Sequence record: OR545507.1
Length of the DNA: 64,000 nt
Reading direction: 5' to 3' (one strand)
In this document: positions 4,487 to 17,006 of the stretch, piece after piece
Position numbering within the stretch: the first letter of the stretch is position 1
Layout of the letters: the number at the start of each line of letters is the position of its first letter
Program-made: the position numbers and the translations under genes
Notes under the pieces: model-generated
What the model was told of the DNA's origin: nothing
Seen by the model: the letters and a program-made list of their open reading frames with translations, nothing else
The model's database searches: none

Positions 4487-5323
4487 ATGGCTATGAATCC
4501 ACTTGCTAAGTACACTAAAATTGAAGAGATCAGTACTAAGTTAGTTACAAACGGCGTTATTCCTTATAAAGAAGGAGTTCTAGGTCCAAAAGGTGTCAAA
4601 TGTGGAGTTTGTGCACGTAGTGCACGTGATGAAATGACACTTAATACCCCCGATATGTTACTAAACGGAGATGCAGTATCCCGTGTTATTGAAAACTGTG
4701 TTCCTAATGTAATTGACGCTGATGAGTTGTATGTAAATGACGTTGAAATGCTTCTTATTGCTATTAAAGTTGCTTCCAAAGAAGAAACATATGATATTAA
4801 CGTTGTATGTCCTGAATGTGAAAAAGAAGGTCGATTTGAGCGTAATCTATCATATCTTCTTGAAACTGCACAAGCATTTGAAGAAATCCCATCAATTGAT
4901 TTAGATAATGGACTCCGTTTAGAATTTAGACCACTGACATGGAAAGAATATTCATCGTTTGCTGAACGCATGTTCAGTGAGCAGCAGAAGACTAAGTTTC
5001 TTGAAACTGCTGATATTGATAAAGATGAAAAAGTAAAAATATTTTCTGAAGTATTTGAAAACATGGCTCAACTTAACTTCGACATGATCGGTGGAGTTAT
5101 TGCAAAAATTATAACACCAGATGGTGATGAAGTAGTTGAAAAAGAATTTATTAATGAATGGCTTGGACAACAATCGAAGGGAGTACTTAAACTAATTCGT
5201 GAAAAAATGGATGAAGTACTTGAAATTGGAGTATCACATAGTATGGAAGTAGAATGTGATGGATGTAATCATCAATGGGAAATTGATGGACTAAAATATG
5301 ATCCTAGTCATTTTTTCGAGTAA
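4487..5323 (+). CDS. gp26: baseplate hub assembly protein (gp26-like)
   Basis: MNPL start, DVEMLLIAIKVAS followed by CPEC, C-terminal CDGC; two CxxC pairs as in the T4 gp26 family. Confidence 0.75.
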   Translation: MAMNPLAKYTKIEEISTKLVTNGVIPYKEGVLGPKGVKCGVCARSARDEMTLNTPDMLLNGDAVSRVIENCVPNVIDADELYVNDVEMLLIAIKVASKEETYDINVVCPECEKEGRFERNLSYLLETAQAFEEIPSIDLDNGLRLEFRPLTWKEYSSFAERMFSEQQKTKFLETADIDKDEKVKIFSEVFENMAQLNFDMIGGVIAKIITPDGDEVVEKEFINEWLGQQSKGVLKLIREKMDEVLEIGVSHSMEVECDGCNHQWEIDGLKYDPSHFFE

Positions 5324-5532
5324 TGCTTCTCCAGTCATCTCCTGAAGAAATACAAGAAGTACTGAAGGAGATAGAACTGAATAAGTCAGAAATCAAAAAT
5401 GCACTAATGGAATGTTCTGTATATATGGATAACATTGACTATGGAACACTCCTTAATATGCCATTAATAGATAGAGACTTATTAGTTAAGTCTTTTAATA
5501 AAAAAATTAAAAAACAAAACGAGAAGCACTAA
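5323..5532 (+). CDS. baseplate hub assembly catalyst (gp51-like)
   Basis: 69 aa overlapping the gp26 stop; YGTLLNMPLIDRDLLV resembles the gp51 'MxxxER' motif. Confidence 0.55.
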   Translation: MLLQSSPEEIQEVLKEIELNKSEIKNALMECSVYMDNIDYGTLLNMPLIDRDLLVKSFNKKIKKQNEKH

Positions 5533-5541
5533 TTTTCATAT

Positions 5542-5568
5542 AGCCAGCACATTGTTGCTGGTTTTTTT
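5542..5568 (+). terminator. intrinsic terminator of gp26-gp51
   Basis: CCAGCA/TGCTGG stem followed by T7. Confidence 0.8.
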
Positions 5569-5786
5569 GGTTTTAAACTACAGAATTATTTGAATTGAAT
5601 TATGAAAGGATTAATTTTAATATTATTGGATTCATCTAACTCATTTCATTCGTTAGCTGAAGAATATTCGTTACTACGTAACTCATATTCATTTAATTAA
5701 ATTAATTATAAAGAACTTTAAAAGATTTAATACTTGACGGGATTTGTTGAGGACATTTTCATCCCCCCGCAGGGGAATGAAGACAA

Positions 5787-5810
5787 TAAAAAAGAGACAA
5801 TGAAGTCTCT
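5787..5810 (-). terminator. intrinsic terminator closing the candidate ncRNA
   Basis: Minus strand AGAGAC-ttcatt-GTCTCT followed by T-tract. Confidence 0.65.
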
Positions 5811-6241
5811 ATTTCTTGACGCTGATGGTTTCAGCATTTATTGTATTGCGAATTTCTTAAAAATATATTAAGAACGAAAGCGGGTTGCTCTGTTTCTCTC
5901 TATCGCAGTCATGTGCAACGGTCGTCAGTCTTAATCATCCTGACACTCACCTGAAAGTCTATACAATCAAACTTCAGGCTGTTTATTAAAATCACTTAAT
6001 AAACTCCCTTAGCAAATCTGGTAAGGTGCGATCCTTATATGTCTATCGAGGAACTCTCTGTATGCTTATCGGAGTTCTTTATTGAGCCGCATTGCCGTGA
6101 GGGGTTCAAACTATGCCCACATCTAACGGGTTTCTTTTGCTCATCGCACTGTTGAACTGCTCATCTGCCATCTACATTTTCGATAGGATCAGGTTCTAAT
6201 TTATATGCATTTCTGCATTCAACAGGATTGTCATTACTACA
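5787..6241 (-). ncRNA. candidate large structured non-coding RNA (~455 nt), family unassigned
   Basis: No ORF of 60 aa or more; promoter 6248-6275 upstream and terminator 5787-5810 downstream; about ten stems, one nested long-range pairing, and GAAA tetraloop on the minus strand; core lines ~50% GC versus ~20% in the flank. Confidence 0.6.
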
Positions 6242-6247
6242 ACAAAC

Positions 6248-6275
6248 ATTATAGCACAAACTTTAAAGTTGTCTC
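6248..6275 (-). promoter_or_regulatory. early-type sigma70 promoter driving the candidate ncRNA
   Basis: GAGACA-16 bp-TATAAT with extended -10 (TGcTATAAT); same register as five other promoters in the window. Confidence 0.7.
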
Positions 6276-6329
6276 ACTATTTTTATAAAAATATTCATTA
6301 AGTACTTAAAATATTGCAAATAACTAATC

Positions 6330-6337
6330 TATAAATA
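6330..6337 (+). promoter_or_regulatory. late promoter TATAAATA
   Basis: Perfect consensus 31 nt upstream of endonuclease VII ATG with GAGG RBS. Confidence 0.8.
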
Positions 6338-6367
6338 TTTTGATAACAAATAGTTTGGTGAGGAATT

Positions 6368-6859
6368 ATGAAAAAAAGATTAAAAGATAGTAAGGATGCT
6401 GCAAACTATCGAAACGAATTACTAAAGAAACAAAATGGAATAGATCCTATAATTAAAGAACCAATAACTAAACCAGTACTGGATCACTACCACTATGGTA
6501 ACCAACATTGTAGACAAGTTCTTCAAAATGAAGTCAATGCTTGGGAAGGAAAGGTACAAAACAGCTTCAATCGATATATGAAGCACTTAACTGATAAACC
6601 ATTATATGAGGTACTCAGAAATCTTGCTGATTACTTAGAGCGTAATAACAGCATTCCTGACGATGAACAAGTTATACATCACACTGCACTAACTGTGGAT
6701 GTTAATAAGTTTAAAAGGCTTCCAGCAACACAGCAAAACGCGATTCTGGAAGGGTTAGGAGTTGTCCCTGGTAGTAACACTACTGCTCGTGTAAAGCAAG
6801 CCAGAAAGCTGATTAAGGACGGTAAATTAAATATGGTTGATATAAAAAAAGGGAGCTAA
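6368..6859 (+). CDS. gp49: recombination/packaging endonuclease VII (Holliday junction resolvase), zinc-cysteine-less variant
   Basis: Colinear with T4 gp49: QNG..., LDHYH (D40/H41), N-A-W-E-G (N62/E65), LRNLADYL, IHH, KFKRL; 163 vs 157 aa. Confidence 0.8.
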   Translation: MKKRLKDSKDAANYRNELLKKQNGIDPIIKEPITKPVLDHYHYGNQHCRQVLQNEVNAWEGKVQNSFNRYMKHLTDKPLYEVLRNLADYLERNNSIPDDEQVIHHTALTVDVNKFKRLPATQQNAILEGLGVVPGSNTTARVKQARKLIKDGKLNMVDIKKGS

Positions 6860-6869
6860 GGCTCCCTTT
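6848..6869. terminator. bidirectional terminator between convergent gp49 and gp46
   Basis: AAAGGGAGC-taag-GCTCCCTTT with A-tract before and T-tract after. Confidence 0.85.
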
Positions 6870-14342: not shown

Positions 14343-17006
14343 ATGGCAGATACAAGTAAAAAGTATGCACAACAGCAGTTGGGTCGTTTTGACCCATCTT
14401 ATCCGCAGTTAGCAACTGTTATGGATAACAGAGATCCAACTAAATCAGGAAAACTGAAAGTTTGGATACAAGGTTCTCAAAGTGATAAAAACTCAAAAGA
14501 ATCATGGATAGAAGCATCTTACATGTCTCCTTTTGCTGGTAAAACACCAGGTATTCCAAGTGCTGATGCATATGGTCAATATCCAAAAGGATACGGTTTT
14601 TGGGCAGTACCACCAGACGTAGGGTGTACAGTTGTTGTAATTTTTGCACAAGCCCGTACATTCCAAGCATATTGGATTGGTTGTGTATATGACCAGCGTA
14701 TGAATACTATGGTTCCGGGTATGGCAACTGAAGTAAGTAATTATGGTGGAACTGATATGCCACTTCCTGTTACTGACTATGATCGTAACACTATCACTAC
14801 CGATATGCAAGACAAATATGCTAACGTTCCAATCATCGCAGGTCTTAAAAAGCAAAACCTTTTATATGACGAAGAAGCTGGGTTGGCGAATCGTAGTAGT
14901 ACTCGACAAACCACAAGTACTGTATATGGAATGTCATCACCACGTGGAAATAGTTTCATTATTGATGATGGATATACTGAAGAGGAATTAACTGCACCCA
15001 CATGGGATCAAGACCCAGATGGATATCAAGATACGCAATTTAATAACCCAGTAAACGATACCCGTGTTGGTTCTCGTAAAAATGAAGGTGTTGTAATAAA
15101 AACACGTAGTGGTGCACAACTTCTTTTATCAGAAGCAACTGGTGATGTTCTTTTAATTAACCGTGACGGTACTGCACGTATTAAATTCACTGGTGAAGGT
15201 GATATTGACATGCATTGTGACAAGAATATCAATATTCGTGCAGGACAAGATATTAATATTACGGCTGGACGTTCATACAACATTGAAACCGGACAAGATT
15301 TCAATGCACGCGTTGGTGCAAATACTAAATTAGATCTAATTGGTGCTCTTGATGCAAAAGTTGGTGGACAAGTGGTGGTTAATTCAGGTGCTGACCTTCG
15401 TTTAGTTACGGCTGCATCATTACGTATGCAAAGTGGTAGCAGTACTGATATTACGGCTGGTTCAAATGCTTCTATTTCTGCCGCAACATCTGCAAACCTA
15501 ATTGGATCATCATCAGCAATTATTAGTGGTGGTGGTCAAACATTAACAGTTAATAGTGGTGGTAATAGCGGTACTGCTGAATTTACTGCACCAAACTTTA
15601 GAACACCATCTGCTGGTCTTAATGAACACATTCATGATATCGCTGCATGGGTTAACGCTGAAAATCATGGTAGTTATGTTGAACCACCAAGACAAGGTGG
15701 TGGAAGTGGTTCTAGTGAATCACCAGTACAACCACAACCAGCAAATGATGTATCACCAGAATTACCCGTAGCACAAGACACTGAAGCTGTTCAGTTTGTT
15801 AACTATACATCAGAAACTGAACAAGTTCAATCACAAGATTTGATGACATCTGATCCTGGGATGACTGGATATAGTATTACATATGAAGGTTTACATATGT
15901 TAATGCCATGTAGCGGTACTATTCGACAATATGGTTACTGGGGGAAAGGTGTTCCAACACAAAGTGGAGGAAAGGCAGACCGTTCAGGTTGGGAAATACA
16001 ATGTAAAGGTGATGTAGTTGCACCAGATGGTGGTGTGGTAGTAATTACTAATGGTGCTCTTTTAATACAACATAAGTCTGGATATAAATCTATTTTTTAT
16101 AATATTCAATCTGATTTATTAAACAAAGATGTTGTTCAAAAAGGTCAAGTTGTTGGAAAAGCAAATGGTGTCATACAGTTTGAAATTCGTGTTACATCAG
16201 CAAATGTTCTTGGATTCAGTGGTTCTGTTGACCCAGGATTATTTTATGCTTCACAAACAGGAACAGGGTCTGATGCGGCGAATAAAACATTAATTGGTGG
16301 TCAAGCAACTAATCAATCTGCTCCAAAAGCAGTTGTACAACCTTCAGTTGATAGTGATGAATTGGTAGTTACAACAAAAATCAAAACGATAGGTACTGGA
16401 TATTCTCAACGTGGTTCTCGTCATGTGCCTCGTAGGAGAAGAACACAGAGAAGTGGAGCTTCAACAACTCCGGTGGAGCAACCTACCTATAATATTGGAA
16501 ATGTTGATAAAACTGCAATCGATTGGAAAGTTGTTCCAGGTGATGCACAATTTATTTCTGAATTAAAAGAATATGAAGGTACATTACAATACCAACAAGC
16601 AAAAGGATATTATCGTAATGGTAAATTCTGGCGTTATTTGGATAGTCGTGGGTATCCAACTATTGGTTATGGTCACTTGATTATTAGTGGTGAAAACTTT
16701 TCAGATGGAATAACTGAACAGCAAGCCAACGATATGTTAGTTCGTGATAGTAGTAAAGCTATATATGATGCTAAATCAATTTATGCTTCATATAACATGA
16801 AAACACCTTATTTGGCTCAACAAGTACTATGCCAAATGGTATTCCAGATGGGTAAAGGTGGGGTACTTAAATTTAAAACTATGTTGTCTGAATTAGCTAA
16901 AGGTAATTATAAACAAGCTGCTGCTCAAATACGTAATTCAGCTTGGTATCGCCAAACTACTCGCCGTGCTGAGTTAATGGCTCGTCGTTTAGAGGCATGT
17001 CAATAA
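14343..17006 (+). CDS. gp5: baseplate central spike gp5: OB-fold, beta-helix, HxH apex, degenerate M23 domain, C-terminal T4-type lysozyme
   Basis: VMDNRDPTKSGKLKVWI and PPDVGCTVVVIF (gp5 OB); 8-residue-like repeats; NEHIHD; KEYEG...DSRGYPTIGYGH (GH24). Confidence 0.88.
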   Translation: MADTSKKYAQQQLGRFDPSYPQLATVMDNRDPTKSGKLKVWIQGSQSDKNSKESWIEASYMSPFAGKTPGIPSADAYGQYPKGYGFWAVPPDVGCTVVVIFAQARTFQAYWIGCVYDQRMNTMVPGMATEVSNYGGTDMPLPVTDYDRNTITTDMQDKYANVPIIAGLKKQNLLYDEEAGLANRSSTRQTTSTVYGMSSPRGNSFIIDDGYTEEELTAPTWDQDPDGYQDTQFNNPVNDTRVGSRKNEGVVIKTRSGAQLLLSEATGDVLLINRDGTARIKFTGEGDIDMHCDKNINIRAGQDINITAGRSYNIETGQDFNARVGANTKLDLIGALDAKVGGQVVVNSGADLRLVTAASLRMQSGSSTDITAGSNASISAATSANLIGSSSAIISGGGQTLTVNSGGNSGTAEFTAPNFRTPSAGLNEHIHDIAAWVNAENHGSYVEPPRQGGGSGSSESPVQPQPANDVSPELPVAQDTEAVQFVNYTSETEQVQSQDLMTSDPGMTGYSITYEGLHMLMPCSGTIRQYGYWGKGVPTQSGGKADRSGWEIQCKGDVVAPDGGVVVITNGALLIQHKSGYKSIFYNIQSDLLNKDVVQKGQVVGKANGVIQFEIRVTSANVLGFSGSVDPGLFYASQTGTGSDAANKTLIGGQATNQSAPKAVVQPSVDSDELVVTTKIKTIGTGYSQRGSRHVPRRRRTQRSGASTTPVEQPTYNIGNVDKTAIDWKVVPGDAQFISELKEYEGTLQYQQAKGYYRNGKFWRYLDSRGYPTIGYGHLIISGENFSDGITEQQANDMLVRDSSKAIYDAKSIYASYNMKTPYLAQQVLCQMVFQMGKGGVLKFKTMLSELAKGNYKQAAAQIRNSAWYRQTTRRAELMARRLEACQ

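Follow-up and report, generated by a model that had tools for sequence, protein, structure and literature searches.

Few large RNAs are known to have several pseudoknots, and those that do are mostly catalysts or the cores of ribonucleoproteins (RNPs). GOLLD and ROOL, which are often carried by phages and prophages, are large, highly structured, stand-alone RNA genes of unassigned role. Another class comprises ColE1 RNA II and the R-loop origin transcripts, in which a folded RNA of ~0.5 kb is made from a strong promoter, and a G-run and AT-rich DNA lie near its 3′ end. Pseudo-ToxI-type phage mimics of host regulatory or antitoxin RNAs provide a precedent for one RNA that is common to a phage and a defence locus. 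We found no relevant account of the RNA described here, and no transcriptome of a 121Q- or Rak2-type phage, in the searchable literature, where the nearest precedent is from PA5oct, a distantly related Pseudomonas jumbo phage. PA5oct produces abundant lncRNAs of 236–619 nt, which make up to 5% of phage reads, and two of them are very abundant from early infection (PMC7318152). Four ORF-free transcribed loci on one strand (ncRNA001 to ncRNA004), one of them 451 nt long, were defined by RNA-seq; structure or conservation was not reported (PMC7318152).

The window analyzed here is a stretch of 64,000 nucleotides from record OR545507.1. Positions 5700–6360, which contain the RNA tract and its flanks, share 100% identity with Escherichia phage 121Q (genus Asteriusvirus), a Rak2-like jumbo myovirus with a genome of 348.5 kb. 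When ORFs of 50 aa or more on either strand are counted, 5533–6367 (835 nt) is the sole ORF-free tract of >130 nt in the 64-kb window. The first-pass annotation had singled out this tract on the same grounds, and its GC counts were exact (30/60 at 5881–5940, 29/60 at 6061–6120 and 12/60 at 5581–5640). The RNA has a GC content of 0.40, compared with 0.21–0.23 for its flanks and 0.349 across the window, and the single-sequence fold of the locus has an MFE z-score of −2.76 relative to shuffles. The locus is flanked by a gene annotated as endonuclease VII in relatives (6368–6859, plus strand) and, on the other side, by a small ORF (5323–5532, plus strand) that follows a T4-type baseplate gene (4487–5323; Pfam T4_baseplate), with a Rad50-like gp46 gene further out. 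Strong terminator-like hairpins at 5542–5563 and 6848–6869 close the convergent gene pairs that flank the RNA locus, and one of the two scores on both strands in the terminator scan.

On the minus strand, we identified a sigma-70-type extended −10 promoter at 6248–6277, with a first hexamer at 6275–6270 or 6277–6272 and a second hexamer (6253–6248) preceded by TG (6256–6255). The scanner also detected a hairpin (5810–5793, with arms 5810–5805/5798–5793) followed by a T-run, together resembling an intrinsic terminator (5785–5810). Both elements had been recognized previously, at 6248–6275 and 5787–5810, respectively. The core RNA predicted from these signals is ~455 nt, from a start at ~6241 (±3) to the end of the T-run (5785–6241, minus strand), and it is homologous along its full length in relatives. 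The block formed by TG, the next nucleotide and the second hexamer is invariant in 30 of 30 aligned copies and is also present in the copies from Klebsiella phage RaK2 and from the E. coli island described below.

Rfam 15 gave no matches at the gathering threshold in the 64 kb. Permissive searches, with E-values up to 10 for the region and up to 1 for seven homologous loci, returned chance-level matches only, so the covariance search that the first-pass annotation had proposed leaves the novelty of the RNA standing. That annotation had also failed to recognize tmRNA, RNase P or group I cores, which agrees with our results: ARAGORN detected no tRNA or tmRNA, the Rfam tmRNA model scored 5.5 bits against a threshold of 47, and neither RNase P nor group I appeared at E-values up to 10. 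From these comparisons, the RNA looks like a new family of large, compactly folded ncRNA that is unlike any Rfam family. Like GOLLD and ROOL, it is large, highly structured, phage-borne and encoded by a stand-alone gene, and its role is unassigned. It differs from them in being smaller and rich in pseudoknots, in being present as multiple paralogues scattered through each genome (four in the 121Q type) and in occurring in lytic Rak2-like jumbo phages of enterobacteria, and the GOLLD and ROOL models of Rfam had no match in the window or in the seven homologous loci.

For comparison with PA5oct, we used two covariance models built from the new RNA, one for its 3′ domain (R1) and one for its 5′ domain (R2). 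The test covered the stretch with ncRNA001 and ncRNA002. With filters off, R1 scored no higher than 19 bits, at a different place in the locus and on the opposite strand, and R2 found none. The PA5oct lncRNAs at MK797984 8263–8498 and 21951–22401 (L048:764–999 and 14452–14902) are GC-rich, ORF-free and of similar size. They may be analogues of the RNA.

Among phages, 72 records match the core RNA by blastn, and all of them are Rak2-like jumbo phages. The complete ones are 310–386 kb, and two are short partial Klebsiella records. The hosts include Escherichia, Salmonella, Klebsiella, Erwinia, Yersinia, Serratia, Pectobacterium, Cronobacter and Xanthomonas. Most of the 72 records have 4–5 matching places each, and those of the Klebsiella RaK2 type have 1–2; the divergent RaK2 itself carries a full copy that was detected by both R1 and R2. 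In the single complete 121Q-type genome scanned, the two models independently agree on exactly four copies, all on one strand, at ~90.5, 193, 248 and 327 kb of 348.5 kb. Each occupies its own gap of 600–720 nt, and no neighbouring gene is common to them. The paralogues are old, given that other genera have a separate orthologue for each 121Q copy. A pattern scan yielded 31 IMG/VR loci, most on contigs of 350–380 kb, and R1 confirmed 30 of the 31. A second, more degenerate pattern gave, among the matches listed, no real locus out of 100 from genomes and four out of 80 from metagenomes, one of which is on a 362-kb contig. The degeneracy of this pattern was too high for collections of genomes and metagenomes, and thus the distribution outside phages is under-sampled. 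A search of plasmids gave no match. All of the Rak2-like jumbo phages sampled, from enterobacterial and Xanthomonas hosts, carry homologues, and the RNA is a core non-coding component of a poorly understood group of phages that is being proposed for therapy.

We considered whether the tract could instead comprise short protein-coding genes or non-functional spacer. Automated GenBank annotation places two to five “hypothetical protein” features under the match in several records, and a 28-aa ORF with a GTG start lies within the RNA (5909–5995, minus strand). However, a search for a conserved ORF across the family found none that keeps its position or length, and one family copy lacks any sense ORF of at least 25 aa. 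Moreover, the helices display a pattern of compensatory substitutions, and conservation spans at least nine host genera. This explanation, which these data already contradict, is extremely improbable, and the tract is almost certainly a real structured RNA gene. The description of a novel, multi-domain structured ncRNA in the first-pass annotation is thus upheld by the homologues in 72 phage records, the covariation and the lack of both a conserved ORF and an Rfam match.

The 30-sequence alignment has the same organization in every copy, in which the TG-extended promoter and invariant blocks are followed by helices that differ in sequence yet remain complementary. Comparison of homologous regions, as had been suggested, revealed compensatory changes in ~13 helices and three pseudoknots, one of which locks the 5′ end. 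For RNA structural biology, this is a new fold that comes with rich covariation data. The 5′ domain (6083–6232, minus strand; R2 scores of 72–160 bits in 31 copies) includes a pseudoknot between 6225–6218 and 6156–6149, the latter in the loop of a 3-bp hairpin (6160–6158/6148–6146). Nine compensatory versions of this 5′-end duplex were found, with a mean of 6.95 bp for cognate combinations versus 4.2 for non-cognate ones. The domain also contains a GAAA-capped hairpin (6218–6214/6209–6205), a second hairpin (6192–6182/6172–6165), the helix 6143–6139/6087–6083 and the helix 6129–6122/6100–6095, which encloses a variable hairpin. The GAAA-capped stem had been predicted from the single sequence and is supported across the family. 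The alternative pairing of the 5′ end proposed at the same time (6223–6228 with 5937–5942, as a switch or pseudoknot) is paired in only 54% of cases and is not kept in the family.

The central domain (5982–6082, minus strand) was delineated from the alignment and pairing counts. It has hairpins at 6077–6072/6056–6051 and 6037–6033/6026–6022 and an invariant single-stranded block at 6011–6004. The first of these hairpins had been predicted, and it is 98% paired with double changes in 6/6 pairs. The proposed stem 6007–6011/6022–6026 is 81% paired without covariation, and it competes with 6033–6037/6022–6026, which is 87% paired with two double changes. The long-range helix that was to enclose much of this region (6180–6190/6030–6049) is 61–76% paired with almost no covariation, and stem 6152–6157/6104–6109, placed inside it, is 57% paired; neither is kept in the family. 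A candidate fourth pseudoknot, between 6066–6063 in the loop of hairpin 6077–6051 and 6014–6011, is tentative at best; it has two stacked covarying columns but failed the comparison of cognate with non-cognate combinations (3.9 versus 3.6 bp). A pairing of 6047–6043 with 5828–5824 was rejected, as it shows no covariation and 12 mismatched cells.

The helix 6004–5995/5990–5981 of the central domain, predicted as 5981–5989/5996–6004 and supported across the family, encloses an optional module of 35–50 nt in other copies. This module has a conserved loop-like core and occupies two alternative sites in different paralogues, either inside helix 6004–5981 or in the loop of hairpin 5874–5854 (A4 columns 565–600 and 740–775; examples in L038, L026, L044 and L001:4379–4537). 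It may correspond to the feature named “repeat_region” by the depositors of UE-S1.

The 3′ domain (5840–5981, minus strand; R1 scores of 80–145 bits) is a double pseudoknot. It comprises a 12-bp helix (5979–5968/5961–5949), the helix 5907–5903/5851–5847 and hairpins at 5945–5940/5928–5923, 5900–5896/5880–5876 and 5874–5868/5860–5854. In the model-based alignment of 31 distinct sequences, 97% of cells are paired and 26/33 pairs changed on both sides. None of 500 shuffles equalled the real alignment, and sliding the partners by 1–3 columns reduced pairing to ~40%. One pseudoknot (5919–5915 with 5888–5884) is 100% paired with double changes in 3/5 pairs, and the other joins the hairpin loop 5967–5961 to 5846–5840 (99.5% paired, 5/7 double changes). 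Most of the local stems suggested earlier hold, and in this domain 5924–5928/5940–5944 is 95% paired, 5854–5860/5868–5874 is supported across the family, 5950–5958/5971–5978 corresponds to the 12-bp helix with its register one step off, and 5884–5888/5915–5919 is fully paired and is in fact a pseudoknot. Further downstream, the proposed stem 5821–5825/5831–5835 is 38% paired and not kept. The 5′-end pseudoknot, the loop pseudoknot 5961–5967/5840–5846, the 3′ extension described below (5733–5784) and the multi-copy nature of the RNA were absent from the first-pass annotation.

The T-run hairpin is 98% paired, with double changes in 5/6 pairs. It occurs in about two-thirds of family members and is missing from the B and D paralogues. 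Beyond it lies a conserved 3′ extension (5733–5784, minus strand); the 30 aligned copies all have it, and so do RaK2 and the island copy. As this extension is present in every copy, the conserved unit is ~510 nt rather than 455 nt; the core proposed earlier is real, and the conserved RNA continues ~50 nt past the 3′ end assigned to it. The extension contains a perfect 10-bp tail hairpin with a 4-nt loop (5781–5772/5767–5758) and ends with the second copy (5742–5733) of a direct repeat of ~10 nt, the first copy of which lies at 5825–5815. Both the tail hairpin and the second repeat are kept even in copies that lack the T-run hairpin. Variation in the tail hairpin is all C-to-U in the 5′ arm, which preserves U-G pairs on this strand only and thus points to a constraint at the transcript level.

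The two direct repeats, which bracket the terminator and tail hairpin, change in concert, with the same variant within each copy and different variants between copies and lineages (both repeats read CGUCAAG in the window copy, CGUCAG in others and CUUCAAG in RaK2). If the repeats were processing sites for one active site or nuclease, the RNA would be self-processing or a processed precursor, with a mature form distinct from its primary transcript. The identity of the two repeats within each copy and the ribozyme-like complexity of the fold would fit this explanation. However, no known ribozyme family matches, and no covarying partner for the repeats was found among the copies; the candidate partner 6168–6160 can pair in 19 of 29 copies, without compensation. 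Thus, we regard processing at the repeats as very unlikely.

We also detected a complete copy of the RNA, with everything from promoter through second repeat as well as the stem-loop that comes after it, in two of 5426 complete E. coli genomes (NZ_AP027515.1, 3478976–3479514, L290:11960–12560; NZ_CM130020.1, L291:7001–7539). The two isolates are unrelated, one being from human faeces in Ecuador and the other from poultry drinking water in Bangladesh. In detail, the copy lies in an island of ~10 kb that is inserted adjoining ffs and encodes an integrase split by IS3, several hypothetical proteins and a serine recombinase, as well as a trio of DuOB, DUF488 and mSLOG-DUF4326 genes that PADLOC assigns to the candidate defence system PDC-M45. 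The best match of the island copy, with 80.6% identity, is the A-type copy found in Serratia phage BF and in Erwinia phages, and the island copy retains compensated pairs. Within the island, only the RNA gene (L290:11960–12550) matches phages, and no jumbo-phage homologue was found for the flanking proteins. Thus, we infer that the RNA gene travels as a self-contained module. Because this RNA belongs to the core of the phage clade and is seldom found in bacteria, transfer was probably from phage to island.

The island copy suggests that the RNA is a point of phage–host conflict, and this lone captured copy beside candidate defence genes offers a concrete handle on such conflict between jumbo phages and their hosts at the RNA level. 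The situation resembles the pseudo-ToxI case in that the same RNA gene occurs in phages and in an island with candidate defence genes. The RNA is unlike type III antitoxin mimics in lacking tandem repeats and an adjacent toxin of that type. Its conservation as a core feature of the clade argues against a mere accessory anti-defence gene. It is conceivable, if doubtful, that jumbo phages depend on an essential RNA machine with this RNA at its core, which would be a ribozyme or else a multi-subunit RNP of paralogues whose different pseudoknot sequences prevent cross-pairing, and that the island copied the RNA for use against such phages, as a decoy, a sensor or a handle for hijacking. If so, this would be the first bacterial island that mimics a large structured phage RNA.

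The explanation that we favor, to which we give close to an even chance, is that the RNA acts in trans as an RNP or scaffold RNA. Host RNA polymerase would transcribe it from the start of infection, the sigma-70-type promoter being the one feature from which early expression is predicted. Most transcripts would stop at the T-run hairpin and some would read through to the tail hairpin. The folded product would be a stable protein-binding or scaffold RNA, and the resulting RNP or RNA assembly may serve a core step of the jumbo-phage cycle, with paralogues that would combine one common core with differing peripheral modules and their own pseudoknot sequences. We favor action in trans because structural selection extends over all 450 nt, a pseudoknot buries the 5′ end, the A-type copies in four genera have no co-oriented downstream gene to regulate, and the gene moved alone into a bacterial island. 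The lack of a common neighbour among the four 121Q copies, the convergent genes beside A-type copies and the presence of the RNA alone in the island likewise argue against a cis element that depends on specific neighbouring genes. The analogy with the abundant PA5oct lncRNAs is consistent with action in trans and is weakened by the lack of detectable homology to ncRNA001 and ncRNA002. A simple trans-acting RNA does not explain why the tail hairpin and second repeat lie beyond a good terminator in most copies, and the concerted variation of the direct repeats is likewise unexplained and counts against it.

The conservation of the tail past the terminator would fit an origin primer acting in cis, with each copy marking one of 4–5 origins, which we consider unlikely. 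In this mechanism, the structured transcript would stay hybridized close to the six-G run in the tail hairpin and to the AT-rich DNA that follows, and would prime leading-strand synthesis, as in plasmid ColE1 RNA II or the T4 R-loop origins. The dispersed, same-strand copies in 121Q (~90, 193, 248 and 327 kb of 348.5 kb) are compatible with this, as is the strong promoter located ~480 nt upstream of the invariant G-run hairpin, which is followed by DNA of 21–23% GC. An island with only the RNA module could, moreover, exploit the replication machinery of a helper phage. The RNA shares with ColE1 RNA II its size of ~0.5 kb, strong promoter, G-run and AT-rich DNA, but has far more tertiary structure, and three pseudoknots and invariant loops over 450 nt go far beyond known priming needs. 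In addition, the terminator would halt most transcripts ahead of the G-run, the GC-skew profile simply tracks gene orientation, and no iterons or tandem repeats were found at the RNA beyond a weak, AT-rich match of 13 nt in 2.2 copies.

The genes downstream differ among copies. Copies B, C and D and the island copy are just upstream of co-oriented genes, and the A-type copies in 121Q, CBB, Munch and Hallingskeid, which represent four genera, have convergent genes downstream. The former arrangement raises the possibility of a cis-acting leader or regulatory cassette, in which the RNA would modify or gate terminator read-through into the early genes that follow, much as in antitermination or riboswitch control. 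The order of promoter, RNA, T-run hairpin, stem-loop-plus-promoter cassette and co-oriented genes in 121Q copies B, C and D, the A-type copy of a Yersinia phage, RaK2 and the island copy fits such a role, as does the presence in B-type copies of one more hairpin, with a U-run, that separates the promoter from the RNA body. However, promoter, RNA and terminator upstream of co-oriented genes were not found in all members: the A-type copies in four genera keep every conserved feature with only convergent genes downstream, and the B and D copies lack the terminator. Furthermore, the downstream genes have their own promoter-like cassette, and the RNA is several-fold larger than known leader RNAs. 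A leader function is therefore rather improbable.

Stem-loop-plus-promoter cassettes are a feature of T4-type phages, and the downstream hairpin with its promoter-like hexamer resembles them. In the window, a long imperfect hairpin is located ~45 nt downstream of the RNA (5662–5690, minus strand), with a conserved base and inner arms that vary in a complementary manner; its equivalents in other copies are in A4 alignment columns 925–1075. Most other copies have co-oriented early genes, with a promoter-like first hexamer, directly after this hairpin. The extra hairpin of B-type copies is GC-rich and is located between the second hexamer of the promoter and the RNA body (L040:2800–2870, which is 121Q copy B; L013:600–668; L017:6700–6765). 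Possibly, it terminates transcription that arrives from upstream, in a position overlapping the start site of the RNA itself.
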